A DNA stretch of 64,000 nucleotides from contig OZ038379.1 in the NCBI GenBank assembly GCA_964036045.1, positions 29,946,001-30,010,000 on the forward strand. The letters are read 5' to 3'. A program made the translations under genes and the position numbers. This stretch comes from Eutreptiella sp. 'Long Island Sound 2002'. Lineage: Eukaryota > Protista > Euglenida. Below are positions 4,521 to 45,059 of this stretch, one piece after another (position 1 is the stretch's first letter; every line of letters starts with the position of its first letter). The notes beneath the pieces were generated by a model that was not told the origin of the DNA, did not search any database, and saw nothing but the letters and a program-made list of their open reading frames with translations.

Positions 4521-5501
4521 AGCACCAGCTGGACATTATGTGGATTCCGGTATGGCGGCATAATACTTAGATATTTGAGATCACCTTTTGATACTGCATG
4601 CATCGATGCTAATTTTCTAGGTACAAAGTCGTCAGAATCTGGATTTTGCAATTTTCGATGTTTCAGAAAGGCCGATTTTTTTGCATCATCTGATTTGGAA
4701 TGCTTCAGTGTTTGTATTGACACTGTCAGAATCTCGAATAATGTCCGTTTGCGGGATTCCAACTTTTGGCAGTCAAATTTTTTGTCGTAGCTCTTCCTTG
4801 TGTTTGCCTTGTGCCATCGTACACCTTGATGCCTAGTTTGACAGTAAGTGTTTGTGACCAATTTTTGACTCCACTTGAGTATAGGGTTAAAAGGTTGCTC
4901 CTTTCACTCTCAGCATCTCATCTTGCATGGTGGCTTGAGATTCCAAGCCCGGCGATTGAGTGGGTGGACTAACTCATTGAGGCCAAAGGAGGCACAGGTT
5001 TGTTCCACACAGTGTGTTGGTCGCTTCGTTCGTTCTCAGAACTTTGTTCGAGCAACTACTTCCTTTTGTAGGACTGGCCGCCCAAAGAGATTCCACACCA
5101 CTAGAGGACTAACCCATTTAGGCAAAGTCATTCACAGGTTTTTTTTATTGTTTGCTGGTTGGAGATTGTGTGTCCCGAATGCTTGCAAACAAACGTCACC
5201 GGTGGCAGATTGCATGCTTAAGTCAGTTTGGTCACCTTCAACCTTCAGATTTTGCCGCCCAAAGAGATTCCGACCACAATCGCACGGGTGAGGACTAACT
5301 CGGTTATACCCACAGCCACCAAGGTTTTATGCTTGTTTTCTTTGCCTTCAATGTTTGTCCACAAAGCATTTGTGTCGATTTGCATTGTCCATCGTCACTC
5401 TCTTCCGTCATTTGCAATCTTTGATTGAGCAATCTACAACTTGGTCTTTTGCCTCTTTTAGAATGCAAGCCGACAACACCTTCCTATTCGAGTGGGGCCG
5501 C
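4521..5501 (+). repeat. Copy 2 of the 981-bp direct repeat, lacking the first 6 bp (CACTAC) of the left TIR
   Basis: It begins AGCACCAGCTGG directly after ...GGTGGGGTAGTG. Identity with copy 1 ends at ...GAGTGGGGCCGC. Confidence 0.95.
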
Positions 5502-6978
5502 TTATGGTGTGTGGGTCACCAAGGTATTATGTCGTGGCACTTGTGCCGCAAGTTGTCCGACCGCGAACGGAATTGTGTTTTCAAGGATGCTTTGCAGTCG
5601 GAAGATGCCTCCAAAACAAACGCGGCCAAAAAATTGTGCGTGGACTGCGCAAGGGAAAGGGGGGAGACCATTTCACTTCATCCCACTGCCGCACTCGCGG
5701 ATCCAACCCCCAAGCGTAAGAGGCGCTCGTCCAGCCTTAACATTGAACCTCCAACGACGCCACGTGGCTCAAAAACCCAAGGAACCTATGGGAGTCCCCC
5801 GGTTACCCCCAATAAGGAGGTGGCCACGTTGATAGAACAATTGGACGCGTGGCTTGGTGAGAGTGAGGCTCTTGAAAATTTGACTCCCCAAGAAAGCCAA
5901 GTCACCGATTGGAAGAAGAAAGCAGACCACTGCAGATGCTATGCGCAATGCGAAAATCCGTATTGCCGATGCAGAGGCAGTGGTTGAAGATTTGTTGGCT
6001 AATGTATTCGTTTTGCAGGATGCTGGTGGCCAACTCTCTCATGAGGTGGTCAGGCTTAAGGAGCGCATCCGGGGAGATGACGAAAATTCGGATGCCGAGG
6101 ATGATTCCCTCCCTGTTTCTTTGCTTAATAGGGTAGAGGAAGGGTACGGATGGCTGCCTTCCAGGCAACGTGCGGTCGCACAACGTAGGTCAAGGCATGC
6201 ACAACGCGTCAAGGCGCGGGAGTTTGGGTTGTATGCCAAGGAGCAAGAGTTGGCAACAGCAAAAGAAGAAGAGACCAAAATGGTCAAGCAACTCGAGTTT
6301 GCTCAAAAAGAACTCGCTTTGTGCCGCAAAAACTACAAAAAATTGCGTGGTGATCATGTCATGGCTCTGCAGTCCATTCTGGCCCAGCTAGGCATTTCGA
6401 AAACGGCCTATTTCGGCCACGCATATATCGGAAAGTATTGTTGCCTACTTTCCACAATGCCAATCGCGATGGCCATCACGCAGCCTTTTTTCCTCCGTTT
6501 CCCGCGGAAAGCCGGGGAGACGCGAAGGCAGTACAATGCGCGCATGAAGCACAATGCGCAGTATCAGCAGATGTATTGGGCACGGCACAACTGGATTCAC
6601 CGGTTTGTAAAATGGGGCCAAATTCATCAACTGGTGAGTGGCAGCTTTGACTATGTAGAGCGCCCTGAGCTTCTGGAACTCTTGCGCATTCGTACTGCTT
6701 CATATAGTGGCTTTTTTGCCAAGCATTTTCCCAAGGACAAGCCCACACCCAAGCAATATTTTGCATTGACGCATGCGGTTGAATTCTTAGCCGAGAATGA
6801 TTTCTCTGGGGAGGGGGATGAGCAACCGATGGAAACCCTCCACCATGAATGGAACCGCCTTTGGGTTAAGTCGCGTCACTGTGTCCAGCGGAAAATGGCT
6901 GTGGAACATTGCTTGAACTCCATGCATGTTAGGAACAATGTGAAGATCCTCGTTCTTGCGGACAAAGCACAATCCTGA
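5502..6978 (+). pseudogene. Second Chapaev/RAG1-like transposase (element Y), lacking the first two catalytic aspartate motifs
   Basis: N-terminal RKLSDRER...AKKLCVDC is homologous to element X. It has a coiled coil, LGISKTAYFGHAYIG, and TPKQYFALTHAVEF...GDEQPMETLHHEWN. The C-terminus aligns with 3526-3966. No SxDG or LHxxLG motif was found. Confidence 0.7.
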
Positions 6979-8384
6979 TATGTTGAATCCCGTTTTGCTT
7001 TGTGTTTCGTGGCTTTGTGCTCTTGCAATGCTTCAGAATGTAGCCCCTTCAGAGCCCTTGGGGGGAGGGACCAGAATGTCATCTGCAACCCTACCCTGGC
7101 AACATGAAAAGCCATCCCAAGAAGTGAACTTGGACACCACGATGACTCCTACATGGCCCATAAGGTTCCCCAAATCAAAATTAACCCACAAGGAACCCAA
7201 TGCAAGATGGCGGGGGGCATGGGGCAGGCTTCGTATCCGCACGGGGACCCTATAGCAACATCTCTGGGAAATCAGGGCCAAAATAGGGCAAAAATGCGAT
7301 TTTTGGGTCATAGCCGGGCCCCAAACCTTGGGGTAAGGTGGGATGAAGCGTTTTTTTCATCTACATGGGTCCAAATGTTGATTTAGACTCTATCCCACCT
7401 TAACCCTATGATGTCCGCCCCTTGGCCTAACGGTGGGGTAGTGGCGACATGTCTGGGTTACATGTTTCCCTCCCACCTGCCTGCCTCCCTCCCTTGAGAA
7501 CTTCCTGCCTCCCTCCCTCCCACCCAGCCAGCAGTTGAACTTTCTGCCAGTCCCTGGCGTCCTCTGTGGTGCTGAGTGGTGCACAGTGGTGCACATGCAC
7601 AGGTTCAATGGACCACTGTCATTTGCAAATCATCAGCTTTGCTTTGCTTTCTGTCCAAGTTTGAGCATGTGTCAAACGAATGGTGGGGAAGATGCGACCA
7701 AATGAGGTTAAGATGGGGCGAACTCCAGAGAGGTGGGTATACAGTGCATGCCTGCCCATCTGATGTTGCATGGTGGGTTATGAGGCCCGAGAACCCCAGA
7801 AAATGATGATCTTACCCCAGGTGCACCTAGGTGAAAATGTTATTTGGGCAGGCCATAATCCTAATGAGGGGCCAACCTACAAATGGGGTCAATCAGCGGC
7901 CAACCGACCGAAACCGCCACTGTGGCCACTCCTAACATATGCAACAAGCCTAGGTTGACAACCCTAGGTCAAGGGTTTCCCACGGTGGGGACCCCCAAGT
8001 AGGTAGTTTCAAGTTGTGAAGTGCCCCTTGCTCTCCTCTATCCGCAATGCCATTGCCTAATTTTCAGCAGTAAAACAGGTTATATGGCCCAGAAAAACGC
8101 CAAAAACAAAAAACGACGGGCTATTACACTCGTGTTACGACCCGCATGTGCCAATAATGAACTTTGTGTTTGCGTGTTCACACACGCCATAACCTGCACT
8201 TGCACTAGCCTCATGGATATGATCATGTCTGTCTGAGGAGTTCTTGTACGTGTTTGCTCGCCCTTGCAGCCCACACACGCCATAAACCTTTGCGCACTCC
8301 AACTAACGGTCCCTTGTTCCCACTATTGAGTGAGTGTGTGCACGGGGCAAGTGTAGATGATGTGTGGATATCATCCAAACCCGA

Positions 8385-8636
8385 GGAGCTTACCCAGCCA
8401 CGGCGGGGGGGGGCGGGGGGGGGGGGGGGGGCTCCGGCCGTGCCGTGCCACGGTGCCGCCACATAGGGTGTGTCGTGTCACACGGGGCTGCCGCTGTGTT
8501 GTGTTGTGTGAGGGTGATCAGCACTTGTGTCACATGTGTCACCTGTGCCGGCGTGCCACCATGACACGGAATTGTTAAGGGGGGGGGGGGCATCGGAAAG
8601 TGTGCCGCGGCACGTGCCGTGACATGGGTAAGCTCC
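8385..8636. mobile_element. 252-bp MITE
   Basis: TIRs GGAGCTTACCCA / TGGGTAAGCTCC. CGA is repeated at 8382-8384 and 8637-8639 (3-bp TSD). The interior is non-coding. Confidence 0.75.
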
Positions 8637-9999
8637 CGAATATATAGAGCACACATGCATGAGTATCAATTACCGAAGACCGAAACCCCCTCTGTACATA
8701 ATGACGTAGAACATCACCGCTCTGCCATATGTATTGCATTCATGTGAACATCGGTTGAACCCATGAGTTTTTGACAAGTGTCTTCTGCTTTGCTCTACAT
8801 TCCGAATACTGTTGGGATTGGGATGTTACAAAGTGCATTCTTGCTAACCCATAACCCATGTGCTATGCATATCACGGGTAAACAAGATGCGCCATGTACC
8901 TCTTACGTTTCTCAGTCTCTCAGTGAGCCCGGTTTTTGCCGTTGTCCCGCTTGCCTCGCTCCCCACTAATAGGTGTGTGCCTCACATCCCACCCCAATGA
9001 GGACCCTTTTTTTTCCGCTGTGTTTGTGGATGGCTATGTCCCGCGCTCTTCTGTTCTTGTGTTTTAGCTATGGCCTTCTTCTTGCATTCGCCTTTCCCAC
9101 TCACGAGTCCTATGCATGCCCTGCTTCTCCAGTCACACGGATCCCTTTTTCTCCGAATTGGGAACTAAATTCCAGATGCACAACCAAACCCCCACTCATA
9201 GTGGCAAGTAAAAACATGTGTTGCAGTACGTATCATGGCCTTATGCTTGCTTGTGGACTGCTATGGGGACCAGGCAGAGGGGGCGGTGGGATTCTGGAGC
9301 TCCGATCCACAATACGCGCCGATCCTTGGGGGTTTACGACCTCCGATCCATGATCCAAGGTACACAATACCATGGACAAGGTATAGTGAGGAGATAGGTT
9401 GTCAATTGCACCACACTTGAAACATACATTGTATGTCGTATGAACATTTGAAAAAAAAGAAGCATTTGTAGTTTTGTTTTTGTTGTTGTAGTTAGTTTGT
9501 AGCATGGTTTTTCGCTTCATGCCACACAAATATCTCAATTTGTCTTGTGTTTGCTTCCTATGCCTTCCATGCCTTCGTCTTTTGCGTATTGGGGGGGTTC
9601 GGTTTCCGTCCCCGCAGTATGTGCATATTTGCAATTGAAACCATTGTGGGAAAAACACCCTCTCTTTGCACCTCCTCCCTTCTTCCTAGGGTTCTTGCAT
9701 CGAGTGTGGCTCTCAATTTGGTGTTTGTCGGGTGGCTCAATGTCCACTGCCAAGGGCCCAAAGGAGCAGCTGATTGCGCTACACGATGTCAAAATGTGCA
9801 TTCGTGGCTTGGCAACAAATGACGGCTTCCAATATGACCTACAAAATCCCACAGGTGTACCCACATTGCGATTCGAAGTCCATGCACACCCACCAAGCTA
9901 TTCCTGTCCCACCACACAAAGTCAAGGCCACAAGTCCTTTTGTAACTAACACCCGCTTTTGTCGTATCCCACAACCCGTGACGCCCTCTCGAAGAATAG

Positions 10000-10270
10000 G
10001 CAGGGGGGGGGGGGGGGGCACTTTTCACATCCGTGTTGGGCTTGTGTTAACACAACACATGAGGGGGTGGGGGGGTACTTTTCACCGCCTATGTCGGGGC
10101 ATGTTAACACGTCCAATAGGCTGTGTGTTGTGTTATGTGTTGTTTTGTTGTGATGTGTTGTGTTGTGTTGTGTTGTGTTGTATTATTCCTTGTTTTGGTT
10201 TGGTTTTTTTTGTTGAGGGTGCCGTCCCCGCGTCCGCCCCACGCGCCCCCCCCCCCCCCGCATCCCCCCT
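10000..10270. repeat. (GTGTT)n-containing dispersed repeat at the 5' side of the transposase remnant
   Basis: It shares GGGGGTACTTTTCACC...GTTAACAC blocks with 12480-12590 and CCCCG(C/T)GTCCGCCCC with about 11590-11610. Confidence 0.6.
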
Positions 10271-11116
10271 GCATCCCGCTATACCGGTTTTGAGGCATTT
10301 TGCCAAAACGTCTAGATATGTAGAAGAGAGCAGTCGAATGTGCACTTCTTGTAACACGTTTTGGTGGTACTTGTTGTCATTTCTCCGTGCAGCTCAAAAT
10401 ACTCTTTGAAATTGCTCCTATTTCTTTTTGTACTCCCTTTGTGCGGAGAAGCTTCAAATGTTACCAACACTTCTTTCGGTTGGAGGTCTCCTTCACAACC
10501 TTCTGTTGTGTTTGTTGGCTATTTTGGTGGACCCGGGCGAGGAGGTGGCCCCGGTGCTGAAAATGCAAGTGTGCTGTGATGCACTGGGGCGTATCGTCTT
10601 TATTTCCGGTCCCCATCCGGGTCACGATTAGACAGCACGTTGTGGAAAAGGTGGGGTCCAAAGACGTTCTGTGGTCAAGAGCTTGGGGGGGTAGACGGTG
10701 CCTACAGTGGCAATTTTCGTTTGGCAGCACCCTGCCGCAAACCAAAGGGGAGGCCTCTGCCGGCACGTAAGGATAGGTACAACCAAATCCATGCATTTTT
10801 TAGGGCACATGTTGAACACATTTTCACTCGTATTTGGCCATTTGCCATTGTGCATCAAGTGTGGCGTGGCAAGGGCTTGGAGGGTGCATGTGAGTTGCAA
10901 CGCTGCATAGGGCCCATACATGTTCTTTTCCATTTCATCGATTTTGAATTGAGCCGCAAAATCATGTACGAGCCCGCGGGGGTTTGGTCCCACACCCCTG
11001 AAGGTGCCCCTGCTGCCGAGGAAGTAGAATATGAAACACCCGAGGGGGTCATTGGTGACGATAGCCCGGATGAAGGAGATGAAGAGAAAAGTGAGGATGA
11101 CTTAGGCCCAGTATGA
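10270..11116 (+). pseudogene. PIF/Harbinger-ISL2EU (DDE_Tnp_4-type) transposase remnant
   Basis: Motifs KMQVCCDALGRIVFISGPHPGHD, VDGAYSG, APCRKPKG...YNQIHAFFRAHVEHIF are spread over shifted frames with stops. Confidence 0.75.
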
Positions 11117-11649
11117 TGTCAAGACAGTGCCTCCCATGAGGGCGGCGGTGTGCTCTCTGGTTCGCAGGAATGGTTGCGACAAGGCAAGGACCGCTCCTCT
11201 TCATCTAACCATTTAAATGTATGGCAACCACGCTTAACCCGTTCTGAAGCTGCCCGAGTTCGTACCGAAATGGCAGTGAGTGCAGCAGAATTGGACCGTT
11301 ACCTTCATAGGGATGATTGATCGTGCTCCATTATGGCCAACATACATGTCTCCATGTCTAGTGTGTACAGTGTAGTATGGAGTATCTATGCAGCATGGCA
11401 TAGAATTCGTCTCCTGTTGTGCTACCATGTGCCCACGTTTCGGATGCTGCTCAGGATGGTTGTCAACGGTTGCTAACAAGGAATGCAATTACTCTGGGTG
11501 TGAAATTTAGCAAACTAAAGAATTTTAAGGCACCAAAGGCCGAAAATGGCTGCACAGACGCTTGCAACCGCCCCCCCAATTTGGTTCTTTCCCCGTGTCC
11601 GCCCCGCGTCCTATCCCCCCCCCCCCCCGCGTCCATGGCACCCTCGTTG

Positions 11650-11975
11650 TGTCATTTTGTGTTGTGTTCTTCTTTTTTTATTTTTTGTTTGTGGTGTGGT
11701 GTGTTATGTCGTACGGTATTATGTTGTGTTGTGGTGTGGTGTGGTGTGTTGTGTTGTGTTGTGTTGTGTTGTGTTGTGTTGTGTTGTGTTGTGTTGTGTT
11801 GTGTTGTGTTGTGTTGTGTTGTGTTGTGTTGTGTTGTGTTGTGTTGTGTTGTGTTGTGTTGTGTTGTCAACACAACACAACACAACACAACACAACACAA
11901 CACAACACAACACAACACAACACAACACAGCACCACGCAACACAAGACAAGACAAGACAAGACAACAAGACAACC
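11650..11975. repeat. Inverted pentanucleotide microsatellite: (GTGTT)n then (CAACA)n/(CAAGA)n
   Basis: The orientation switches at ...gtgttgTcaacac... around position 11867. Confidence 0.95.
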
Positions 11976-12293
11976 GTGAGAGGTGAGGTCATACATGTTT
12001 GCTGTATTTAGCAGGACTAGTATGTGGGTGGGAAGACCTGTATGCGAGTGGTGTGGGTCGCCTGGCCCAGGCCTGGTGCAAATAGGAGGTGAGAAACAGG
12101 AAGGGCCAAGCCGGGTGTAACAGAGCAGCCGGGGCCAGATGGTCTCAAAGAAAATCTTCCCTGATGACCTAACCCAAAGCGCAAATTGCACTGCTTCTTG
12201 TATACACAACCTTTTGGAATTTTGTCGATGAAGTTTTTCACCTTGCGTGCTTGCTAGCTTCCTCTTCTTCTTCTTCAACACACCCCCGGAGAC

Positions 12294-12450
12294 AACACAA
12301 CACAACACAACACAACACAACACAACACAACACAACACAACACAACAAAACACAACACAGCACGACGCAACACAACACCACACAACACCACAACACAACA
12401 CAACACAACACAACACAACACAACACCACACAACACAACACAACACAAAA
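12294..12450. repeat. (CAACA)n microsatellite
   Basis: Read directly from the sequence. Confidence 0.95.
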
Positions 12451-14228
12451 TCTTCGGCTTCTTCTGTTGCCATGGGGTTGACAGAGGGAGGGGGGTTACT
12501 TTTCACCTCCCTGTTGGGCCTGTTAACACAACACGGGAGGGGGTGGGGGGGTACTTTTCACCTCTGTGTTGGCCGGCCGTGTTAACACGCCTAATCCCCC
12601 TCGCCATCTCCCCCCCAAATTTGAGCATTGGGGGGAAACGAAATTGGCATAGGCACGACACAAACTGACTCCCATTATCATCGAAAGCCACTTGAGGGTT
12701 TTCTTTGGTCGAATGAACAGAAGCAGCTGAGACGTACGTCGCTTGGGAGCAAAAAAGATGGGGCCAAGCGAATGGACAAGTAAGTCTCAAAGTGGCAAAC
12801 CATGTGCAAAAAGCCAGACGTGCAAATCAAACGGTGCAATATGGATTGGAAACTCCAAAGCCGAAGAAATCGTCCACAGCGAATGTGCGCAAGCTCACAA
12901 ATTTGCAAGTTTTACAGTGTTGTTGAGAGGCATTTCCTTGCCCAAGCCATGATTGGTTTGTCGTCCACGGTGTTTTGGTCTTGTTTTGTGACCGGCATCT
13001 CACATTCCACCGTCGTCCAACAGTGTTACCCTCCCAAAGAGGCGCCCCTACCTTTATGCCCATGCGACAGTCATAATCAAGGATGGGCGCGTCACAACTC
13101 GGACCAAGGCCGAGCCTCCCGTGTAATCCGGATGAGAGACAAAGGTAGAGGAGGGTGGGCTCGGGTGCATCACAGTCACAGCGGTCGGGGCCTGGAGGAG
13201 TGGAGGGGAGTTTTTTTTGGGGGGGGGGGGGGGCTCTCAAGGAAAATAACCGTAGGTTACGCTCCCGACCCACACTCAACCTTTCCACGACCACATCCTT
13301 CAACGAGTTTACACATTTTTTACCTCTCCAAACTCCTCATGCTTATCGTGCATCAAGTAGAAAGGGAGGGGGGTGTCCGTGACGTGCTTTGGCACAGCTT
13401 CACCGACAGCGACACTAACCCCAAGCCCTATTCCTAACTCTAGCCCGACCACCTCTGCCTCGGCCTCTGGTACCCCCACGTCTCACACACCCTGATCCCC
13501 ATAGTGAATGCCTCCGCCACTCCCACCCGCACGCCCTCGACCTCCATGGTGATCTGGATCGGATTGAGTTCGAAGGTGGTGAGCCAAGGGTCACTTTCAC
13601 TGCAATCACTTTCGCCATGCTTTGGATTACTGTTCTTTGCAACGCCAACTTTGTTATGTACAATTTTTTTTGCAAAAAGCTTTCATGGCACGAAGGAGAG
13701 GGTAGGGAGTTCGTGTTGCGCTCACCAAAGGATGGACCGAGCGCGGGAATTTGGAGGCGAAAGGTTGTTGTGTGCCCCCGTCGGGGAAACGACCGCGCAA
13801 GTGGACATCCTAGGGCCCACCAGCTGCCGTTGGGGGGAGGTACCTCACCGCCGGCTTGGGATGGCCGCTTGGACGCACCTGGCCAACGGCGAAGGCAGTT
13901 GCCTTCCTCTGTGTGGACTTGACAAAGAGAAGTGAAACAGGGCAAGTCCGGGGGCTCCGTTGGCACAACCGACCAAGGGAATGGAGTGGAAAGGGAAGGA
14001 GTGGTGAGAGGCCGATGGGCAACACGGCCTATGGAGGGAAAGACCAAGGGAAAGGAAAGGGACGTAGAGAGCGAAGGATAGGGCAAGGAGGAAGAGGAAG
14101 GTCGCAGGGTGGTAAGGTGGGAGAGGCCGATGGGCACCACCGCCTATGGAGGGAAAGGGTCCAAGGGAAGGGCAGCGAATGGCGATCGGCCAGTAGGCAC
14201 CGCCAGCTGCAGACAAGAACAACAAACC

Positions 14229-19792: not shown

Positions 19793-21058
19793 GTGAGCCA
19801 AACTTCTTGGAAAGGGGGTCTGGAGGGGCGGGGCATGATGTAGCACTCAGGTACTTGCCTTTTCCTGCACTTCTTTCTACATCTCTTTGGCTTGGTGCAC
19901 TCCCTTCACCAAACACAACAGGAAATCCCCTCGAAGTAGTCGCCAGACCAACGTCCGGCGTAAGTGACATACACCCCTGTTTAGGCAATTTTCATGGAGC
20001 ATATTGATTTACAGCGTTCAATGTTGTTTTTGTAAGACCATAATCGACAAGCAGTTCTGGCCCAGCCAACCCCAGGCCAGATACCCAATTTGGTTGTGGT
20101 GGTGGGGGGGGGGGGGGTGAAGGGGTCAAAACACGACCCGCTCCCCGTTTTTGACCTCGAAATCACGAATCACATCACGGAGGTTGTGAGATCAAACCGA
20201 GGCCGGCCGTATGCAGGGGAAACACCACATAACCCCCTTTTGGAATCTATGCGCGCGCCATAAGCGCTTGTAAAATCCTTATTTTGTCCAACAAAAGTAT
20301 CGCTTGATGAAGTTTTGCTTGGAGACTCCTGAACTGAAAATATTTGTGACGGGGTCGGGGTTAGGGAGGTAGAAGAAAGGGTAATGGCCCTAGACCAGGC
20401 TCCATTCACCCTTTTTCTTCGACACGGACCCCCTCACCAATGGTGTGGCTCCCGGGTCCTCCCTGCCTCCTGCGGGCCCAGCAAGCAGTTCATCGTTTTG
20501 GGGGATGGTTTTGTTTGCATTGTGCATGTGCATTGGGCCTTTTCCACAAAATACAGGGTGTTTTTTAGGCGGAAAGTGAGTTGAATTCTATTGATGACAT
20601 CCATGTGATAAGAACCTGTGCAGAAGGGGGTTATAGAAAGGGTGTTTGGTGGTTGTTGAGGTGTTCGGCCAACACAATGGGCACATTGTTGCTTTGCAGT
20701 CATGTTAGGGGGCCTACCATCCGCTGGGCGCGATTTTCGCCCGTTTTCGCCTGCTTTAACCCCATTTTCATTCAATTTTACGCCTTCTTGTCTTCGTGAT
20801 TAGATTATCTTGGGGTGCACTGTGCGCAGCGTCAGAGCCGTAAATGTGGTGCACGCAACACAAAAAATGCACCAGACCAAACAGGATGATAGCAGTATGT
20901 CAAACGTACATCAATATAGGGGTCCAAAACCCAGAAACTCAATTTAGTGGTGCCGTTTACTTGCATTATGTCTACTCAAAGACCTATTGACAAGTGGGAG
21001 TACGTCAAGTGATAGGGTGCTTTTTCAGTATCAGAAGCAATTGTAGCGGTTTACGGCG

Positions 21059-23222
21059 ATGCACCGAATGAAAAAGCCCAAAGGACGGCGTGCACGTCCC
21101 GTTGACAGTACAGTACGGCCTCTATCTGTGGAGTACCTACAAGGATTGAGTGATGTGTCAACCCTTGAAACTGTTGAAGACATGGTACAGGATGCCCTAC
21201 ATGGTGGAGTAGCTATGCAATTTGTGTTGTGGTTCCTCAGCTTGAGGGAGGCAGATTCCAGATCCACAAAGGGAATGCAGGACCTACGGAGCGACTGGCC
21301 CCGGAGAGGGACAAGAAACGGACCACGTTGGACAACACTGTTCTCCCAAAGCATGTGGACCTGTTTCCTGTCTCTCAACAAATGGTGCATTGGTGCTCGG
21401 AGTCAGCATGTGGATGCCTGCTTGGAGAGTCTATCCAAGGAGCAAGCATCCCTACTTGCTGGAACAAGACTTGTAAACAATCGAAAACCGAACAGTGCAG
21501 AGCAGTCCCTGCTGTACGCCCAGAAAATTGTAGAGCTAGCCAAAGATAACACCATGGTTACTTGGACAGAAAACTACAATAAGTGGCGGTACAGTAGGAA
21601 CGTTGCTCGGCAACGGAACATTTCCATTAATGGGACGTGTGTCGCCATGCTACCTGTCGCCCCCCAATGGAGTACCATGATTCAGGGGGGTTAAGACAGT
21701 GCCTGAGTTACTGGCTGCCATTGGGCAACTCCCTACTGTGCTGCGGCACGCAGTTCGTTCCTTCCATGGGAAGGTTGACGAGGTACGGTCCTGGTACCTC
21801 CGATTTGACCCAGTGCGTGTGCCGCTCGATATTCGGCGATACAATGTGACTATGGCGCCACGGTGGACATGTGATGTCCTACTCATCAACATATCCTCCC
21901 GTGACGGACTGTTGGAGGTCTGCTCCAACGTGGATGAATGGAGAACCAGGACTGGCAAGAGCACCAGTCCGGTTCTATGTGACGTTGACCTGTACTACAG
22001 AATGCTAAAATTGCAATACAATGTAACGCATGTGTCAGTGGCTACAGACAGCTTTTTTGCACACACGCCACTGCTCTTTGGTGTGTGGCATTCATACAAA
22101 TACTGTGTCGCCGAATGTTATCGGCGACTTCTGCCCCTTTGGGCAGCATTGGAATACAAGGACTTTCTTACGGCGCCTGGAACGGTGCAGATTGTAACAA
22201 ACTTCAATCTCTCCATGATGGAGCAAATGGTGCTTGCAGCATTTCTGGCAGCTGGCAGAGTGCTACCCCTGCTACGGGATGCCCAGTTGAACTTCCAGCA
22301 CCGAAGAGAAATTTATGGCGGTGGCGCCGTGAAGTTGCAACAACTAAGTACCCTCACTACACTATTCCGAGACTATGCTCCTGCACTCTTCTACATTGGC
22401 TACCAGGTGCAGACCCTGCACTGGCGGAGACACACACCGTGGTCTGGAAAAGAGGCCTACAACGGGGCCCAAAGTGGTACAATTCTGCACCGTTCTCCTC
22501 TATGCACTGCGGCCCAGAGGGGGTCGACAGCAGTACATGGATGCATTACTATTGGCGCTGCTGCAGTGGGATCCCTATATGGATGCCCTTCCTGGTGCAA
22601 CTTTCAGTGAGGAGAAACTGGAAGCTACGTTGAGTCAACTACAGCAGGGTAAGGAAGATGATCCCACAATTGTCACTATTCAGGATCATCAAAAACCATA
22701 CCGATTCCTTAACAGGAAGCCTAATGAGCCGAAGGACCTTACAGACACACACACGTACCAAGGACCTTCCCAGCCCGGGTTGTCATCCGGGCACAGAGAT
22801 TGATCAATGCTGTACAAAATGGCACGCTCCCTTTGATGCCTTTACCTGCGGGTGTAACTACCACTAAGGGAGTACCACGAGCTGAGTGGCCAGCAGACTA
22901 TGTTTTTCCAGACAGATTGTGGAATAACCTTGATAACACAGAGATGAAAATACTCGGAGTAAAAATGGTCCGAAGCCTGCTGTCACGTATTGTGATCAAA
23001 GATGGCACCCCTGAGGCACAGGAAAAACAGGATAGCCAAGAAGTGTTTGGCTGGAAACCCGCCGGAGAAGCAAACCGCATGAGAGACAACATGCAACATT
23101 TGTTGAACCGGATTGATACCAAGCTAACCCAACTGACACGGCAAGGGCCAAAGCCAGCCCCCAAAACTCAGACCCAAGCCTGGTCCACAAAGGGTACCAG
23201 AACTCAAACCCAGGGCGGCTGA
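21059..23222 (+). pseudogene. Academ/DUF6589-like transposase, frameshifted
   Basis: About 2.1 kb of coding-like sequence across frames. VTWTENYN resembles WxDN, VLCDVDLYYRMLK resembles the second Asp motif, and PLLFGVWHSYK resembles G-x-[FW]-H. Confidence 0.5.
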
Positions 23223-25148
23223 ACACAACCCTGTGCCCGCACGCCCTGCACCACCAGCTAAGCGGAGGGCAGAAGACCCTCCTGATGCTCCTATTCCCAA
23301 GCGACCTCGTGCAACTTAAGCAACAAGGAGGCTTCCGATAATGCACATGGGCTACACAAATAATGTAGCTCAGTACAGTAGTGGAGTAGTGATGGGCGAA
23401 AGTAAAAATACAATGAATACCGTTTAGACGAAATCCCACAGCCGGCATCATTGGAAATTTTACGGCGCTACCGCCGTAAACGGTAGCGCCAAAATCCCAA
23501 AAGGGTATTTCCTTGACCTTATCAGCATCATCATCATCATCATAGTAGTAAGTAGCTAGGCAGCTTCATGTAGTTAGGGGCAGAGCCACACTCCGTGCAA
23601 AGCCCCAGACCCACAATCCGTGCCAAAATACATTGTAAGTCATACAACCCGTTGGTGATCCCTGTTACCCCGTGTCCTGGCTCCTCTACCGCCTGTCAGC
23701 AGGGCAGATGGGCACCCCTGATGTGCGTTTGTTCTGTGTGTTCCGTGGTGGTGGCCGCACGACACCAACCCAGCCCCACTCTCCAAAACCCGAAAGCGGG
23801 TAGTAATGGAGGCATCCAGCGGGGAAATCCCATTGCTGTCTGTTGGGGGGGAGCTTTTGCGATCCTCGCAAGCCGGGTGGCCAGACCATGATTGACAAAG
23901 CCGCACACGTAGAGCCCAGGGGCTAGTTCAAGTCCTCCTAGGGTGGCTGAAGCCTTACCGCCCGGTACCCCGTCAAGTCTTAACCCCCGTTCCAAACCAG
24001 GATCATCAGCCGGGACAAGATCAGCCTAGCCCCTTTATCCACAGTGGGGCACAATTCGAAATCACGAGCCCGACGGAGCATGCTTACGGTGGGGTCCGCA
24101 ATGCAACAGAGCCAAAAACTAGCCCCCTTATCTGCATTGGGGCACACTCCAAACCAACAAGTGGACCTTTCAGGAGAAGGACATGGTCCTGCCCCTTTTT
24201 TTGTTTTTTGGGCAAACAAAGCACAACACATCACAGGTAAGCCACAACAGATGCAGCATGCAGTAGCATGCAAACTACAGGGAGGCACAATACACCTCCA
24301 CAAGGTGCCAGTGTAACAAAACTGACCACAAAGCAGTCACCCTGTGCCTCCAGTGTGATACGTGGATTTCCCCAACCCCAAAGCTAACCCCCTTGAACCC
24401 CTTCACAACCCCATTGATGTAAAGCCATGGAATGAGGCCCCCCCCTTTTGAACCCCCCCCCCCCTTGCTTGCCTGTCCTGTCCCTACCCCTTAGCTACCT
24501 TGGCACCCCTGCACCTCGCCTGCCTCAGGCAGGCCTCTTGTCATGTTCTCTCGGTGAAGTCCTTCGGACATTTTTGTAATTCCTATGGAAAAGAACATGC
24601 AAATGGAACATGCATGGAAGTTTACAGCGCCGTCGCCGTAAAAATTTTACGGCGACGGGGTCCTTAGAAAAAATGAGGCATATGAGTTTTTGGGTCCAAA
24701 CACTTAAGAGGGGATTTACCCCCCTTTTAGGCTGGTACCCATTGTTTGTTGTGTTCACCTGGTAGTTATTGACAGTTAACAGCCTGATACGGCGATAAGC
24801 CAGAATCTCGGATTCAGAGTACCATGCCTGTTAGGTGTTGTTTTTTGGTGTTACTAGTCTTTTGGTTTTTTTTCATTTACATTGCTCCACATGGAAATGC
24901 CACCGTGGCACCATGTGCTTTTTTTGTGCAATCCGGCAATCCTGCGCAGCCCGGATTGGGGTCCTGTTCTGTGCTCAGCTAGAAACTGGTTTCCAGCGCT
25001 TGTAGGTCTCCCCTGTGGATAGCACAGGATACGTTTTGGGGTGCCATTTTGGGCTGCATCCCGGGGGGGCCAAATGGGGGCGTCAGGTGCAGCGAACACT
25101 GCTACCAAAAGGCTGGCGTGGGCCTTTTTCTGTCTCGTAGGACACAAA

Positions 25149-28078
25149 ATGTCAACCCGCGGCGGAAAACGGTGCCCTCGAGTCTTCGTTGCAGAATCGC
25201 AGCAATCAGAGGACCAACCAGATGCAGTAGACCCCCCCCCCCTTGTGGGTGACACGGAAACTGGCTCGCCACACGACGACTACAACGGATCCAATAGCGG
25301 CGGAGATGAGCAAATCAACTTGGCCGAGGACGATGACAGTGACCTCGACGAACAGTCTGCAGGGCAGCATGCAGACATACGTACCAGAGTACGCGGGGCT
25401 CCAACTGGGGGAGGACACTGAGAAATGGGACGAGGACAACGAGGGTGACGTTGAAGGCAAGAGTTCAGGTGAGCGTGGACGACATTGCGTGGGACATCAA
25501 CTGCGAACACGGCCAGTGCCGTACACACAATGGGCTCGTGGAGAAATATGTGGATAGCCTGGCGCATGGGGATCCTATCCAGATGATTCAAGTGGTTTTA
25601 CAAGACATGGTAGGTATGACAACCTAAATGAGCCGTTTTTGCGCCGTTTACGGCGCCGCTTTTACGGCTTTGTCGCCGTAAATTATACATATTTTCCGTT
25701 TATGTGACCTTCCCTTTGTAATTGGAGCACAACATATTACAAAGGCCTTAAAGATACGCAAGAATTTTCTCTTGGACAGTGGGCTACAACCCCACCATAT
25801 TTCAGCACATTTAAAGTATGTATCAGCAACAATATTCGCATCTAATACGCCGCTCGAAATTCTTGAAGAAGCTGCAGGGAGGCATCAGAGGCAGCAACAC
25901 GGGATTTCGGATCCCACTACAGCTGATTTGGCACTGTTCCTATACGTCGGGTCGTACGACAGGCTGCCACTACCGGCATTCCTCACTTGGATGGGGATAC
26001 GTTGTTTGCCGCCATTTTGGCTAGTGGAGAAAAATAATGGACCTCGGTACCAGTGACCAGGTCAAAAAAAGAACTGCTGCTCAACAGAAAGAAATGTTGA
26101 GTAAACAGGTACGTTGTTTCGCACTGTACGCGACGTTTGTGTCCTAGCTATATGTTTAGCCACTATTCTTGTTACATAGAGAGGGGATGCTAGCAAGCGA
26201 TGCAATGGTATTGCATTTGTCGTAGTCGTGGATGCTGTTCGGAGCATCAATATCCGCTACGAGCCTGGTTACGAGCCCGTCCGGGCTTCGTGTTTCAGAG
26301 ACTAGAGTACTGGTCTAACCACTGCCGACGTTTAGGGACTGCCACAGTGGTTAGTAGATTGACCTCTGTCTGTGACGGTTTCCAAACTTAACAACTATGT
26401 GAAGTTCCTCAAGTGCCGGAGGAACGTGATTTGGAATATCTGTCACCCAAAAAATGACCATGTAGCACCTGAGAACAGTATGTTACCTGTCATTTTTTGT
26501 GTGTCTACTCGTACTCAGTGCAGGCCATGGCCTTCATTCTGTATTTGTCCTCATTCTTAGAGACTGTGGTTCTTTGCCATAATTTGGCAAACCAGCTGTA
26601 TGAGAAGCATGCAGACAAATTCATCCCGAGGGGTGGCCTTGGGGGGAGGGCATACGTTGAGTTGCGCCTTGGCAAGGCAGAGTGGCCAGAATGGGGCTCC
26701 CTACTTAAGAGCCCCGTATGGTCTAACCCGGCCTTTGCCACCTTGAGCCAGCGGCTGCTCAACCCTCAGGGTGGGACAGCAGCAGCAGCAGAACCCAGTA
26801 CTGGCTCCAAGGACATCATCACCTTCCAAGCAGAGTTTGGAGACTGGCGGAAGATGGTGATTGGGGGAGCTGATCTGGGTACTATTGCAGCCGGCAGAAA
26901 CACCCAGTGTGTACTGGTGGAGTGTGAGCAGGATGTTCCTTTTAGCGAGGAATTGCTCCGCATTGCCAATGGGGGAACCCCCGTCATCGTGGTCCGCAAG
27001 GCCACTGTAGTTCAGGACTGGGTCGACCAGAATACTCGTGACGGGGCCTCCCAGGTGTGTAATTTTAGTACCAACAGTGTACTTGGGGTCACAGGAAGAA
27101 AGGCAGCTGTTTCTGCCTAACCCCAAGGCCAGTGGACTGGGAGGTATGCTGAGTCTTACGCTCATGAGCCCTAAGGCTGCATCGCTGCCACCATACATCG
27201 GCCTAGAGCTGGGGCTTTGCCCCAGCATTATTGCATTGCTGATGCTCCGGGTTGGGCTTAAGCTTGACGTGGAGACAGGCAATTTTTTTTTTGCCTCGCG
27301 ATGCGGCTGCATCCAAAGCGCAACTGTGGCTTGGATGTTGTAGCTCAGGTTGCCACCGCTTTTCCCAGGTGGCAAGTCTCTATGGTTATTTCAGCCGAGT
27401 TTCTCCAGCATTTCTCCAAAGACATGGAGATTACCAGGAATGCTGATGCAGCCACTGATGACCATGAGCTCAGCCATGAAATTGGCCTCCTGTGCAAGGG
27501 CACTGTTATTGACAGCAGCAACGTCCGCCATCTGACTGTAGAGGACTTGGCAGAAAGGCGTCAATAGGTTGCTGCCCTTGTCAAGAAGCACAGGGAGACC
27601 GAAAGGGAGAGGAAGAAGAAGACCAAGGAGGAAGCAAAGGCAGTTGCAAAACCTGCTGCCGAAGCACCCAAGACTGTGACTGCTACCCAGCAACGTCAGC
27701 AACGCAGGCAGATGCTTTAGGCAGCAGCAGGAGGGGGCAGCAGGCCACCCTTCCACTGGGGGACCAGGCAAGGGCATCCTTGCACCTGCCGCCAGCACCC
27801 CAGGAAAGAAGGGAAAGGGCGAGCAGGACAACTAGGACATCCAGAGTGCCAGGGCTGGCCGTGCTACCCCTGCCCGTCCTACCTCGGGCAACAGCGGGAA
27901 CAACACTCCAAGTGGCAGCCCTGGCAAAAGGAAGCAGACCCGTCAGGTTGGGCTGAGGGCCAAACGGGCTAAACTCGGTGGTGCAGCTTCTGACCTGCAG
28001 CCTCCTGCTGCTGACGCTGAGGTGATGGGGGAGACTGAGCTGGAGTCCCTTTTTGCACCAGCCCAAGATACGTTCTAG
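25149..28078 (+). pseudogene. Multi-exon passenger gene with an acidic N-terminus, a ParB/Srx-like domain and a K/E-rich tail
   Basis: VSVDDIAWD...GQCR...VEKYVDSL..GDPI..IQVV, then after an intron FVIGAQHITKAL, which resembles the ParB IIDG(H/Q)HRxxA motif. Downstream ORFs 25772, 26497, 27038 and 27301 continue on the same strand with frameshifts. Confidence 0.5.
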
Positions 28079-30899
28079 GTGACAGCCTATGCTGTAGTAC
28101 CTGTGCCTGCCTAACGAGATAGCATTGTAGGCTACCTATACAACCTGTACATTATAGGTGAGGACTGCAGACTTGTATGTTGTGCGGTATTCACGGTGCT
28201 AACGCCGTAAATTTTACGGCTTTGGCGCCGTAAACCGCGAGTTTGCTATCAAATGAGGTAATGGACCATACCTTTTTGTCCAAATGTGTCCAACTTTGCC
28301 CAACGGCCAAGCCAATCTGTGGCTTTTTTTTCTCCAGGATATATTTGTCTGATGACACAAAGGTTTCTTTTTTGATTCAGTGCTCAAGAGCACATCAATG
28401 GACGCTTCGGTTGGTTGGAGTGAGAGAACCTAATGTACTGCATGATTTTTATACTGCATTCTCTGCTTGTTTGGCAATGTTGTCTATGCTATGTTGCTAT
28501 GCTGCTGCTGCAAGCTGCTGTTTGTGTATTGCACTGTGTGGGCCATCTCGGAATAGTGGTGTGGGGGGGGGGGGCACTTAGGGCCTGCTCAGCCTGTCTT
28601 GTCCCTACCCCCCTGGTGCACTCGAAGTATCTTTTTGTAGGCCCCCCCTTTACAGCCATTACTCTATTTTCGTTTACGGCGTTGGCGCCGTAAAATTTAA
28701 GGGCGCCCCCCCCTGAAAGCAGTGGTCCCGTCGGGACCGATTTCCCCAAAAAAAACAGGTGTGTCTTTTTCATTCCTGCCCAATAGGGTCGTATTGCGTC
28801 CCATGTCTTTTCCAAGTGTACCAAATAGTGTACATAAGCTGCCTCCAATCCATTACTAAAATCAACCAAGAGGTAAAACAGTGTAGAATTGAGGTGACAA
28901 TTACTTCGCTAATTTGTCATTGACTGAAACAATGCAGCCACACAAGGTGTCCATCCATTAATGATGTCTCTTTTTTGTTAAATATTGGCTTCGACAAAAG
29001 GTGAAAAAGCCGACATCCTGTCCAAATTTTTACGGCGCCGGCGCCGTAAATTTTCCGAGCATCAGTGGTTTGATTTCGGGGGGTTATTGACTGCCAGACA
29101 ATGTTTTTTTGAAAAGCAGTCAGTTTTTGCGGCGACCCCTGTTTTTGGGTTTACGGCTGTGCATGTACGCATAGTGCACCCCAAGATTATGATGATAGGC
29201 AACCACCTGACGACTAGAACATCCATGACGCAACGGCATATACGGCCATCTCATTCATGGGTAACATTGGTGATATGTGAGGTTGAATATAAGGTGTAGG
29301 TGGGCATTGATATCAGCCTCGAGATGTACAATCAGGTATCTATCAAGATATCATGCAAGATTGGAGAACATCTTTGCACAATTGGAGATAGCAGATCGCT
29401 ACATTGCGGTTGTGGTTTTAGAGGTTTTCCTATCTGGTGGGTTTTACCAAATATGCACGCAGTGCAGAGTCAGCCCCTTCAGTCTGGCATGGGTTGGCTG
29501 AAAGATCGAGATTTTGAATGGCCCCAATGACCAATTGGCAGCCTTGGGCTACGCTTGGGTCATCATTTGGTGACAATGGGACGACCTACTCACCAATAGG
29601 AGGCCCAATGAGTGGTATCCATGGCCCCTTAAACGGCTATTGTCGGGGCGTTCAGCTCATTTGTGCAGGGAGTAGACAGAACTTCAGCCCGCCCACTTGA
29701 AGCCATCGGCGCACTTTGTATAGTTGGTTGTTGGGAGCATTTTTGTGTGAGATAATTCTTTTGTGAAATTCTCAATTATGAGCCAATAAGGTTTTCGGGT
29801 CCCAAGTCCGTGGGGCTTGCCCAGGCCATGTAGGATGGGCGCTGCTGCATTTTTTGGCCATTCTGGGAAATACAGCGCCGACCGGGGGGTTTCGGTGGCC
29901 TCAGAGACCCTGTGGTATGTACCCCCCGATATGTGCCGGGCGCTGCTGGAATGCACCATGATCAACGCACCCGTCCGCATTTGTATACGGCCTGGTTTGA
30001 TGGGATTTCATGTCCGCCCCCTCCTCGATTGCTGCTGCAGGTGATCGGGACAGTACCTGTGAGCCAGCAGATGGGACGGCATCTTCTGTCGAGATCCAAC
30101 GCCTGGTATTTGTGAGTGCACGATGCCGATGCAAACACAGTGCATGCCTACCAGTGTGAGCGCGTGAATGTGGGTGATGATTGGCGCCATGTCCGTCTGC
30201 GTTGTCCCCAGATGACAAGCAGCGCGTCTTTTGTCTCCTTAGGGCCGCGATGACACCGAGTATTTTCATCTGCAAACCGAAGAAGCGTTGTATTTGATGC
30301 CCGAGCACGTGCAGGTCACATGACGTCACGTGCTCTGTTTCCGTTGCGCAGTCTTCGGGTCAATCGTGACGGGACAGCGCAGACCTCCGCGTTTCGCTTC
30401 GAGCTCCAGGCAGGGCAAGGGAATGTGCTGGAATGGCCCCAAAGAGCACAGCACCCCGTCATGACATTATGGTGCACAGATCTGCTGGCGCTCCGAAATC
30501 ATATCCCCCGGCACAGCTTGGGAATTGTTCAGTGGAGCATCGATTGGTCCTGACCGCGGGTATCTGCCTGTTTCGGGGGCAATGCTTTGGGTATTTTGGG
30601 ACAGGGGCTGAGGCAATCCATTCCATAAGACGGGCTTGCGGCCGCACTTTCGTGGGGGCCGCTGAGGTGTGATTCTGGACGCCCTCCCCGCAAGCGCAGT
30701 GAGTGGAGTGGTCGAGAGTGTGACGGTCATTCTCGATCAGCCTTCTCTCCCCCTTCCGTCCCCTGTACATCTATTGCCAATCTGGTGCCTCCGTGCACGC
30801 TGCCTCTGGACCGCCCAACTTGCGCCAACACGGCAAGCCATGCAAACGGGCCACCGAATGTCCTTCAAAACAATTATGGACTGCAACGAGCCCGAACAC

Positions 30900-42091: not shown

Positions 42092-45059
42092 ATGGTGGTG
42101 TGGGGTGACGGCACTCTGATTGCGAGCCCCCAATCGTCGCTATCGGTGGATGTTGTAGATGCCCGGTTTCATTGCGATCAGACATTGCAGTGCCGTGGTG
42201 GATTCGTTGCCGATCTCATTTTTTTTCCAGGATTGTCTGTCCACTGTTCATGGGGTGCTGTGCTGAAACATGACACTTTTGATGTCGTGCTGACCTGTGG
42301 AAATGGGGACTGCCGCTCCAAGAGCTAGGATGAGGCATGGAATGCGTGCAACCCAATGCTCCACATGTAAACTGCCGTCAACGACAATAACAGACCACAA
42401 TCTGCACCCGGACAGGGTGGGGGCACCGAAAGACAAGAATTGCAAGAATGCCTTTATGTGCCCAAGAGGGTGGCTTTCGCCAGCCTCTGCATGCATATAT
42501 TTGAAGCCATCGCATTGATCTGCCCCCCAAGAGCTTATAGCCTCCTAACTGTTAGATAGCCACCATGTTGGTGGTAGGGATGTGTTGCGGCTGAGTTTCC
42601 AGAGGATTGTGCCTACGAGCCCCTGCGATCCCAGTCCTGATTGTTGCACATGTTGGGTTGATGGTATTCCCGTGGCCTTTCAGTCATGCTACAGCATCTG
42701 GGCAAGGTGGTGAGTTCCCGTGCTGCTTGGGCCAGCCTTGCTGTCCCATGAATGTTTCTTCATTTCTAGAATGCTGGCTCCGCAATGGCAGTGGTAATGC
42801 TCAGGCTGCTGCTGTTGCTGTTACGAAAGGCTACTGTTGGTAAAAGAATACGCGCTTCTCCTCAGCAGCAGTACAGCAAAGTACTTGAGAGGTGCACAAA
42901 GGCAAGATGGGACTCACCTCAATGCACACACCAACAATACCGGTTGTATTATGCTCAAGGGGAAATTTTCCCTTACAGATAGTGCAACTGATTGAAGGAA
43001 GCCCATGCTCAACCTCTGCAATCCCATGCTTGGATTATTTTTGAAAAGACCCACAGGCATACCCCGGGGGTTATTTGAGTCGCTAGGAGGCTGGAGCTAT
43101 TTTTCCTGTCCCGGGGTGCAGGTCTGTTATACCCCCAGAAAACCCTGTCAACCCAAGGGTTCCTTTTTTCCCCTCTTGTGAGTTGTAGCCTATTTACAAG
43201 CAGGGGCTACCACTAGCTTCCCAAAACGACCCGTTTCTAAAGCATTTTGGGATTTTTGGAGGGCCACCACAGGCCACTACAGGGTTCATTCAAATGGGCT
43301 AAAAACCATTTGTTTTGGCATCTCATGTGGTCTAGAATCATCTTTTATTTCCCCCAGTGGGCTCCTTTGACCTATTTTGGTACCCACCTGTTTGGGCTCA
43401 AGCTTGCAGCTTGCCCTAGAGCAGTGTGTGATTCCGAGGGGTGGAACGCACACAAAGTGTGGGGGTTTGCGGGTGTTGTAGGCGCCATTGGAATTGGGTT
43501 TTGAGCCAGCAAGCCTAAGATATGGCCTATTCTTCATTTGGGGCCGTCTGCGGTCAATCTGCGCCGATTCTGGGCCTTTGGGGGCTTTTTGGGGGTGTTT
43601 CTTGGACATATCATGGAGTTGGAGGGCACCAAAGGGCTCTTTGACACGAGGAAGTCAGGCAGCATGTCTTGTGCACTGACCGTTTTCTTCGTTTGGCCTT
43701 GGTTTAGATCACCCCTGAACAGAAACAAATAAGGTCAGGTCTCGGGGATTTTTTCAGACCCCAAACGTGAAACATTGAATAATATCCGCACCCAGTTGCA
43801 TTTGTGGGTGTGGGCAAAGAGGTACCGGAAGTTTTCTGGATTGCCTTACCTCAATATCTGAACAATTCATTTTGATTATTGCATGCACAATGCAAATTGC
43901 AATGCACACCTGCTCATTTAATTTTGATTTTGTTGTTTTGCCTGTTCTGCACCACATGTCTGTCTGCTTTTTTTTTTACGGCATTGGTGTAGTAATTTTT
44001 TTGAAAATGTTTCATGGCCCCTTGAAGAGGGACCTGCATTGCTACTGAGTGGGGAAAATGCACCGAGGGTGGACACAGCACGCACAGCACACCAAGAAAC
44101 CCACACAGCGCACCCCAAGTATATACTGCAGCCAACAACAGCAACCAATGAGGCACAGTTTTCCGGATTTTTTGTGAATACACTATGACCAATCAGAAGG
44201 GCAGCATACTATTCATAACAACAATGGAAAGTGCACACCACAAGATGGGACCAATTGAGGCATGACAGATGGCATTTGCACTGAGGATGGTGTCAGACAG
44301 CAACACTGTGTCATAAAAAATCACAGTTTCAACCATAGCAATCGATCGCACTTTTGCACAAACTAGACACGTTGAAGATGATAGTGCAATTATAACTAAA
44401 TGCTTGGTTTTGTCAAAAGGTTTGGCAACAAATTACACACGCAGTGTTGAAACGGCTTGGTTTGTATTCGTCCTACTGCTCCTTTTACACTATTGTTCCC
44501 ATTCCTGAGAACACATTCAAAAGGTTGCACTTCATGTATGTGCAGCACACAGCACAATCCCCACAGATGGGCTCTGCTCTTCTTTACCGGTTTCTCTCCT
44601 GTGTGCTTTATGTTTTTCCCACCATAAAAGCACATATATACATTTGGTTTGTATTTTTCTTTTGGACTCAATGGGGTTTAGACCAACATCCCCGAATTGC
44701 TCTTACTAAGTAAGCATTGCCGATGTAGTAGGATGCCTCCGGTCAAGCGCCAGCAGAAAATTATATTATACAAAATGCAAGCTGGCCAAATCCTGCAACT
44801 GCCTAATAGGATTCCCCTTTGCCTCCCCATGCTCTTAAAACCGGTGACAAAGCACTAAGATCTGCAAGATTTAGTGTATTGATTGTTGCCACAGAGCGAT
44901 TTCGTTGGTATCTATTAAAATTTTTACTTTGGTTACTTTATTTTGCAACGTTTGCAAACGATGAATCATCAGGCGCCATTGTTCTGGCAATGTTTCAATG
45001 ACCTGCCAAAGTTGCTGCAAGGTGGCACACGAAGGTAATGGAAAACGTTTCAAGAATGG

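Follow-up and report, generated by a model that had tools for sequence, protein, structure and literature searches.

Introduction

In the En/Spm (CACTA) elements a second element-encoded protein, TnpA, binds subterminal 12-bp motifs near or inside the ends and helps to bring these ends together for the transposase. ParB-like accessory proteins encoded beside arrays of inverted repeats have been described in red-algal elements of the Plavaka, Mutator and Zisupton groups (bioRxiv 10.1101/2025.02.11.637652, later Current Biology), and the Ectocarpus element Sola1-1_Ec32 carries a ParB-methyltransferase (PMC12477816). One such protein, PAG3 of the Plavaka elements of Bostrychia and Chondrus, drew a blank in standard domain searches and gave a ParB match at E 0.29 with HHpred (bioRxiv 10.1101/2025.02.11.637652). 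Academ transposons, which have been reported in bivalves (PMC10294476) and in Basidiomycota and Mucoromycota (PMC10799480), generate target-site duplications (TSDs) of 3-4 bp (AcademX) or 9-10 bp (AcademH) (PMC10045372). Here we describe an 8.4-kb transposon with terminal inverted repeats (TIRs) that occupies positions 20809-29185 of a 64-kb stretch of DNA from the euglenid Eutreptiella sp. 'Long Island Sound 2002' (contig OZ038379.1, positions 29,946,001 to 30,010,000); this whole stretch is referred to below as the window. The element is probably a decayed copy of an autonomous cut-and-paste transposon that encoded a DUF6589-group transposase together with an accessory protein binding palindromes within the element.

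Results

The element has CTTGGGG termini and a 5-bp target-site duplication

The TIRs are imperfect repeats of 36 bp that start with CTTGGGG, and the two ends agree in all of their terminal 13 nt (CTTGGGGTGCACT). Taken together with the flanking ATTAT, the two arms (20804-20844 and 29150-29190) each span 41 nt and are 80% complementary. Within the 64-kb window, exact matches to the 12-mer CTTGGGGTGCAC are found only at the two ends of the element. A near-match to this terminal 12-mer, CTTGGGGTGCGC, is present at 44108-44119 on the minus strand, next to GT-rich sequence that lacks a CCGTAAA half-site (see below), and may be either a chance occurrence or the end of a related element.

A second complete copy, with 91% nucleotide identity to that of the window, lies at 4200-12935 of locus L002 (assembly ERZ25074135). 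It is flanked by CTTAC on either side, and the base preceding its CTTGGGG is C and not T. Since L002 is flanked by CTTAC twice and has this C before CTTGGGG, the TSD is 5 bp long and the terminus is CTTGGGG. The original prediction, which had been made from the window alone and had proposed TIRs with CTTGGGG termini and a 5-bp duplication, is therefore borne out by the window arms and by L002 (ATTAT/ATTAT and CTTAC/CTTAC, respectively). The same L002 flanks rule out a TSD of 3 bp (TTA) with a TIR one base longer, starting TCTTGGGG, which had been named as an outcome that would refute that prediction.

Termini of the same type were found in loci L001, L002, L004 and L006. The single ends of more distant relatives are flanked by the 5-mers CTCAG (L001), TTTTA (L004) and ACATA (L006) and, given these differing flanking 5-mers, insertion is without a strict target sequence.

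A linked pair of genes is conserved across at least three families

Two genes are carried by the element, one for a transposase (gene 1) and a second, spliced gene (gene 2). The pair is linked in L001, L002 and L006, which derive from the same genome and show 55-91% identity, and likewise in L007/L008, which come from metagenome samples ERZ28619739 and ERZ28620982. L007:1-6224 and L008:1-3930 provide an apparently intact copy, with a 746-aa transposase and gene 2, and on the evidence of these sequences at least one other organism appears to harbour a living version of the transposon family. L004b (L004:1-7500) represents a third and more distant family of the two-gene system. Its transposase, encoded on the minus strand (6798-5209), is 27% identical to that of L007 along 553 aa, and the gene-2 homologue lies next to it on the same strand. 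At least three related families were found, and the concern that the two genes might prove unlinked in other copies has been answered, since the linkage extends to other copies and families and to another metagenome sample.

Comparison between families gave proportions of nonsynonymous differences (pN) of 0.23-0.34 against proportions of synonymous differences (pS) of 0.66-0.84 for both genes, and both are under purifying selection at this level. Between the window copy and L002 the ratio of nonsynonymous to synonymous substitution rates (dN/dS) is 0.63-0.76, as expected for the neutral decay of dead copies after insertion. The window copy is itself dead, having acquired frameshifts and lost a splice acceptor.

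Few further relatives were recovered. Homology searches, some word-based and one exhaustive, returned only fragments from the same genome together with P0016, P0017, P0052 and the P0053 cluster, none of which is annotated. The exhaustive search, made with the C-terminal domain of gene 2, recovered nothing beyond fragments of this genome and two relatives from metagenomes, and a scan of JGI metagenomes with the gene-2 motif gave no confirmed relative.

The transposase shows affinity to DUF6589 proteins

The transposase gene of the window carries at least three frameshifts (near 21690, 22487 and 22752) and is broken over four frames. The L006 version contains stop codons and stays in a single frame over the entire gene, from which it follows that the gene has no introns. 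An intact transposase of 746 aa is encoded at L007:465-2705, on a 6.2-kb scaffold from the other metagenome sample (ERZ28619739).

Alignment of the family reveals four conserved motifs: v-v-W-x-D-N-[FYW], P-[IV]-L-x-D-[VE], P-L-L-F-G-x-W-H-x-Y-K and C-[YF]-x-E-[DE]-x-L-E-A. The first of these reads WTENYN in the window copy and W-I-D-N-Y-N in its relatives (family pattern W-x-D-N-Y). In an AlphaFold model, which has a predicted local distance difference test (pLDDT) score of 43, the order of secondary structure is β1-β2/3-α-β4-α-β5 with the D motifs on β1 and β4, an order that fits an RNase-H-like core. The candidate catalytic residues would be those in W-x-D-N-[FYW], L-x-D-[VE] and C-[YF]-x-E-[DE].

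Three methods were used to place this protein. Language-model features of the 309-aa piece encoded at 21681-22607 scored 0.93 against DUF6589 clusters, 182 of the features being shared. A shape search of the atlas with the transposase model ranked a DUF6589 cluster first, followed by bacterial DDE transposases of IS4, IS66 and IS701. With Foldseek against the AFDB clusters, 6 of the 30 top matches were named DUF6589, with E from 1e-4 to 7e-3 and a probability of ~1.0; most of the other top matches are unnamed, with accessions that we take to be from Glomeromycota, a mussel and a coral. The DUF6589 relatives come from bivalves, Basidiomycota, Mucoromycota and cnidarians. The gene-2 model is equally poor (pLDDT 54) and served as an internal control. 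Because it returned a mere incoherent mixture of names, the DUF6589 signal is not just a product of bad models. These results show an affinity to DUF6589 proteins that is faint but consistent over the three methods, no other affinity being detectable. We infer that gene 1 encodes an RNase-H-fold DDE transposase of the DUF6589 group, probably related to Academ.

Gene 2 has a candidate ParB/Srx-like N-domain

The product of gene 2 is predicted to comprise an acidic N-terminus, a domain of ~130 aa, a helical region, an α/β C-terminal domain and a tail rich in K, A and R. In the window the gene is frameshifted in its first exon region and in exon B, and the acceptor of intron 1 reads AT (25702-25703) where that of L006 is AG. 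Intron 1 is otherwise a canonical phase-1 GT-AG intron at a position common to the window family, L006 and the distant L007 family (where it is 61 nt long), and a palindrome lies inside it in all three. Related sequences provide less damaged versions of parts of the gene: the C-terminal exon is intact in L005 (485 aa), the metagenomic P0067 (760 aa) covers gene 2 contiguously from exon B to the end, and in the third family L004:3410-4051 encodes the N-domain as one contiguous open reading frame (ORF), without an intron at the exon A/B position.

By eye, the N-domain shows a strand with a conserved Arg, a helix, a P-x-x-V strand, a helix that starts G-G-Q-H and an E-H-Q-x-Q-Q helix. On this motif pattern the ParB/Srx-like label given by the original prediction is plausible but unconfirmed, as no tool has confirmed it. 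When an alignment of spliced N-domains was compared with all ORFs in 50 kb of plasmid F, using hmmsearch and hhalign, no signal was obtained; the control, between SopB and the second ParB-family gene of F, was also negative and, since two annotated ParB-family proteins of F did not match each other, the comparison is powerless. The C-terminal domain gave no methyltransferase (MTase) or 2-oxoglutarate (2OG) oxygenase signal, and its nearest shapes are generic Rossmann and GT-B folds with template modelling (TM) scores of 0.2.

A string in exon B (GCCATTTTGGCT, 25999-26020) is similar to the core sequence of the spliced leader of dinoflagellates. The full spliced leader was not found in the window with 2 mismatches allowed, and the likeness is probably due to chance. 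Scans for tRNAs and for Rfam families likewise gave nothing.

Family-specific palindromes are dispersed through the element

The palindrome TTTACGGC-N6-GCCGTAAA has five exact matches in the window, against an expectation of 0, and all of them lie within the element, which bears out the internal palindromes noted originally. The half-sites TTTACGG/CCGTAAA are distributed similarly, with 17 of the 21 in the window being inside the 8.4-kb element. When degenerate and overlapping copies are included the palindrome sites number about eight. Each TIR, moreover, ends on its inner side in the half-site GCCGTAAA, at an equal distance from the tip.

Palindromes of different sequence are found in the other families. 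That of the L007 family, CTTACGCGG-N3-CCGCGTAAG, is present in four copies, of which one is at the transposase start, one is in intron 1 of gene 2, and the fourth (4631-4652) lies within the long gene-2 ORF. In L004b there are ~11 copies of TGTCTGG-N2-CCAGACA. Each of the three families has its own palindrome, with several copies near gene 2. The replacement of the sequence in each family, with the palindromic form and the positions kept, is the mark of a protein and a DNA site that evolve together.

Inversion of palindrome-bounded segments between copies

In L001, L002, L006 and L007 the two genes are arranged head-to-head, with the transposase pointing outward to the TIR. In the window copy both are on the same strand, and L004b is likewise tandem. 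The two same-strand genes that the original prediction had described are thus present in the window copy, through an inversion relative to L002, but they are not a defining feature of the family, since four related elements are head-to-head.

The window copy and L002, both of which are complete and have intact TSDs, differ by two inverted segments (segments B and D, Table 1). One breakpoint of segment B abuts the half-site CCGTTTAC (20953-20960) and the other abuts the double palindrome at 24621-24660. Three of the four inversion breakpoints abut a palindrome or half-site, the fourth corresponding to an L002 junction without a palindrome. In L005, exon A of gene 2 has the opposite orientation to exon B and half-sites lie to either side, although this arrangement may represent two juxtaposed fragments instead of an inversion. 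Because the segments between them are inverted between copies, the palindromes appear to be recombination-prone, acting as hot spots; the inversions could be site-specific, transposase-mediated or cruciform-driven.

Table 1. Features of the element in the window. Coordinates are those of the window; strand is given where it applies.
Feature	Coordinates	Strand	Remarks
Left TSD, ATTAT	20804-20808		Same 5-mer at 29186-29190
Left TIR	20809-20844	+	Begins CTTGGGGTGCACT; half-site GCCGTAAA as inner end (20837-20844)
Segment B, transposase gene and part of intergenic region	20961-24606		3.6 kb; inverted relative to L002 and to the L001/L006/L007 layout
Transposase gene, intronless, degraded	21059-23222	+	From ORF pieces and alignment with the 746-aa L007 relative
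Palindrome TTTACGGC-N6-GCCGTAAA, 3' of transposase gene	23459-23480
Double, overlapping palindrome at B/C junction	24621-24660
Second gene, spliced, degraded	25150-28078	+	Exon A 25469-25613, exon B from 25704
Gene-2 intron 1, phase 1	25614-25703	+	Half-site at 25647, palindrome 25661-25682
Double palindrome, 3' of second gene	28190-28234
Palindrome adjoining C/D junction	28673-28694
Segment D	28724-29151		0.43 kb; inverted relative to L002; between palindrome 28673-28694 and right-TIR half-site
Palindrome with perfect 8-nt arms, GC-rich spacer	29029-29050
Right TIR	29150-29185	-	Half-site TTTACGGC as inner end
Right TSD, ATTAT	29186-29190

Sequences adjoining fragments in related loci

Two of the related loci contain additional coding sequence. 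On the minus strand of L005:600-7512 there are five large ORFs (331-431 aa) that share the same faint CaM-KIIN, NDUFA12 and KOW-like matches, and this run looks like a tandemly repeated coding unit beside a truncated element. L003:1-2018 holds the end of a very long ORF, the 1778-aa product of which runs off the locus and has no Pfam match; several ORFs of 300-480 aa on the L003 minus strand (2695-7202), also without a Pfam match, lie beside a transposase fragment.

Discussion

On the reading that we favour, a DUF6589/Academ-like DDE transposase would excise and integrate the element, making target cuts with a 5-bp stagger. The gene-2 protein would be a dimeric DNA-binding accessory, possibly with a ParB/Srx-like N-domain, that recognises the palindromes and the TIR half-sites. 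By coating or bridging the element DNA it could aid the pairing of the ends and the assembly of the transpososome, and it perhaps regulates the two promoters beside the palindromes.

Several observations weigh against this reading. The transposase is without a match in Pfam, NCBIfam, PHROGs, PADLOC and the PDB, whether ORF pieces, intact relatives or alignment profiles are used, and the Pfam DUF6589 model does not match it even with E allowed to reach 10. The equation of DUF6589 with the Academ transposase is a presumption from the matching taxa. For gene 2 the same five databases were blank with the exon pieces, P0067 and L004:3410-4051, searches in which power is low since an intron divides the domain in most copies, and a partial model (pLDDT 54) found no ParB match in the PDB, the atlas or AFDB. 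Formally, at the level of sequence profiles, neither ParB nor Academ was matched, an outcome that the original prediction had listed as counting against itself. The position of GxxR in ParB or GCHR in Srx is occupied, on a correspondence read by eye, by G-G-Q-H-[IF], G-A-Q-H-I or S-V-Q-H-I, all of which are without the arginine. Both AlphaFold models are poor (pLDDT 43 for the transposase and 54 for gene 2), which accounts for the low TM-scores (0.16-0.39 throughout). The TSD length is that of two complete copies only, the window element and L002. Finally, the palindromes could be bound by either of the two proteins, the half-site in the TIR fitting the transposase equally well.

This last point is the basis of a competing account, which we consider unlikely but worth serious attention, whereby the transposase itself binds the palindromes, as for the subterminal or internal repeats of Ac/Ds and P elements, and gene 2 has another role, for example in countering host silencing or in modifying DNA or chromatin via its α/β C-domain. 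The half-site GCCGTAAA does occupy the same inner position in each TIR, where transposases normally bind, and no search has given a ParB signal. One inversion breakpoint is in a palindrome and the other is not, which fits aberrant cleavage by a transposase better than a clean site-specific exchange. However, the palindromes are not confined to the ends but are found over the whole element, including the conserved gene-2 intron and both gene starts. Moreover, algal elements pair similar arrays with a ParB-like gene across unrelated transposase superfamilies, and this published pairing ties the repeats to the cargo gene and not to the transposase. A more elaborate version of the accessory-protein reading, which strikes us as improbable, would have a ParB-type nucleotide-switched clamp load at the palindromes, bridge the DNA in transposition or inheritance and promote the flipping of palindrome-bounded segments between head-to-head and tandem orientations, with the transposase forming an unnamed deep branch of DUF6589/Academ-like proteins that generates 5-bp TSDs.

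It is very improbable that the element is an ordinary member of a named superfamily, either Academ proper or Transib, with gene 2 a captured fragment of a host gene that has no role. TSDs of 5 bp are typical of Transib, and the TIR contains CACTGTG, which resembles the heptamer of a recombination signal sequence (RSS). The termini nevertheless begin with CTTGGGG and not with CAC, and the transposase profile matched neither RAG1/Transib nor any other transposase in the PDB; on these two grounds Transib was rejected. The affinity to DUF6589 points instead to Academ, but the TSDs of Academ are 3-4 or 9-10 bp (PMC10045372), and the ORFs of the window element, L004, L005 and L007 gave no XPG, DEAD or Helicase_C match. 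Gene 2, for its part, has stayed beside the transposase in three families, and also in a second metagenome sample, under purifying selection that is at least as strong; such conservation speaks against its being a passive passenger. Lower still is the likelihood that the palindromes are mainly cis-regulatory or structural DNA (a bidirectional promoter, terminator or cruciform) and not sites for a protein encoded by the element. Their location beside both gene starts, in an intron and 3' of the genes would suit such a function, as would their association with rearrangements. Sites for host factors would not, however, be expected to change sequence between families with form and positions kept, nor to form part of the TIR, and both features point to a co-evolving recognition pair.

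The favoured reading, of a transposase with a palindrome-binding accessory protein, can be set beside several described systems. With Academ the element shares a transposase of DUF6589 affinity (the taxa of the DUF6589 relatives match those of Academ), a multi-kb TIR layout and a second protein function. In contrast, its TSD is 5 bp, it has no detected XPG or helicase, and its partner is an unrelated spliced gene with a set of palindromes. Of the Academ-like transposase that had been proposed, the DUF6589 affinity stands, through three weak methods; a profile match is lacking, and the hallmarks of TSD length and XPG/helicase fail. The statement that the TSD length differs from that of Academ has itself held up (5 bp here, 3-4 or 9-10 bp there; PMC10045372).

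By layout, the element can be likened to the PAG3 and Sola1 modules of algae, in which an accessory gene with a putative ParB-like N-domain and a second domain accompanies inverted repeats in the element's own DNA; there too transposase and accessory gene are often encoded on opposite strands. The differences are several. The transposases of the algal modules are of the EnSpm/Plavaka, Mutator, Zisupton or Sola1 type, whereas that described here is DUF6589-like. The algal elements are 17-21 kb long with three accessory genes, as against 8.4 kb and one accessory gene, and their repeats form a tandem array, whereas the palindromes here are dispersed singly or in pairs. Their accessory proteins join the ParB-like N-domain to an MTase or 2OG oxygenase domain; the predicted domains of gene 2 follow a similar order (N-domain, helical part, α/β C-domain), and its C-domain gives no sign of either activity.

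The closest working analogy is TnpA of En/Spm, a second element protein that binds short motifs, often in inverted pairs, at the ends. There is no sequence relationship, TnpA arises by alternative splicing of one transcription unit, and binding by the gene-2 protein is our inference. Bacterial ParB-parS offers a parallel in its multi-copy palindromic site and, on the pattern seen by eye, its ParB/Srx-type N-domain, for which gene 2 has a candidate. It differs in that the Arg of GxxR is missing from gene 2, there is no ParA partner and the setting is a eukaryotic nucleus; the palindromes of the element are, in addition, family-specific sites of 16-22 bp unrelated to parS.

The proposal that the element fits no superfamily and represents a new lineage was overstated, given that ParB-like cargo with inverted-repeat arrays in algal transposons was published in 2025. 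The novelty lies in the lineage of the transposase, in a TSD of 5 bp, in a compact layout with two genes, in palindromes that are dispersed and specific to each family, the conserved intronic ones among them, and in the inversions.

If the accessory protein binds the palindromes of its element, this would be a compact and testable example of a eukaryotic transposon marking or organising the DNA of which it consists, by means of a protein and a site that co-evolve, and the three families with their three different sites would be natural specificity swaps. The theme of ParB-like cargo plus repeats would be extended to a DUF6589/Academ-like transposase whose TSD, at 5 bp, is unusual, implying that one more lineage of transposases has acquired the module or inherited it from an ancestor. 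Through the inversions associated with them, the palindromes are seen to reshape the very elements that carry them. Annotation is affected as well: Pfam-type searches do not detect the family, and standard pipelines would miss or mislabel it.

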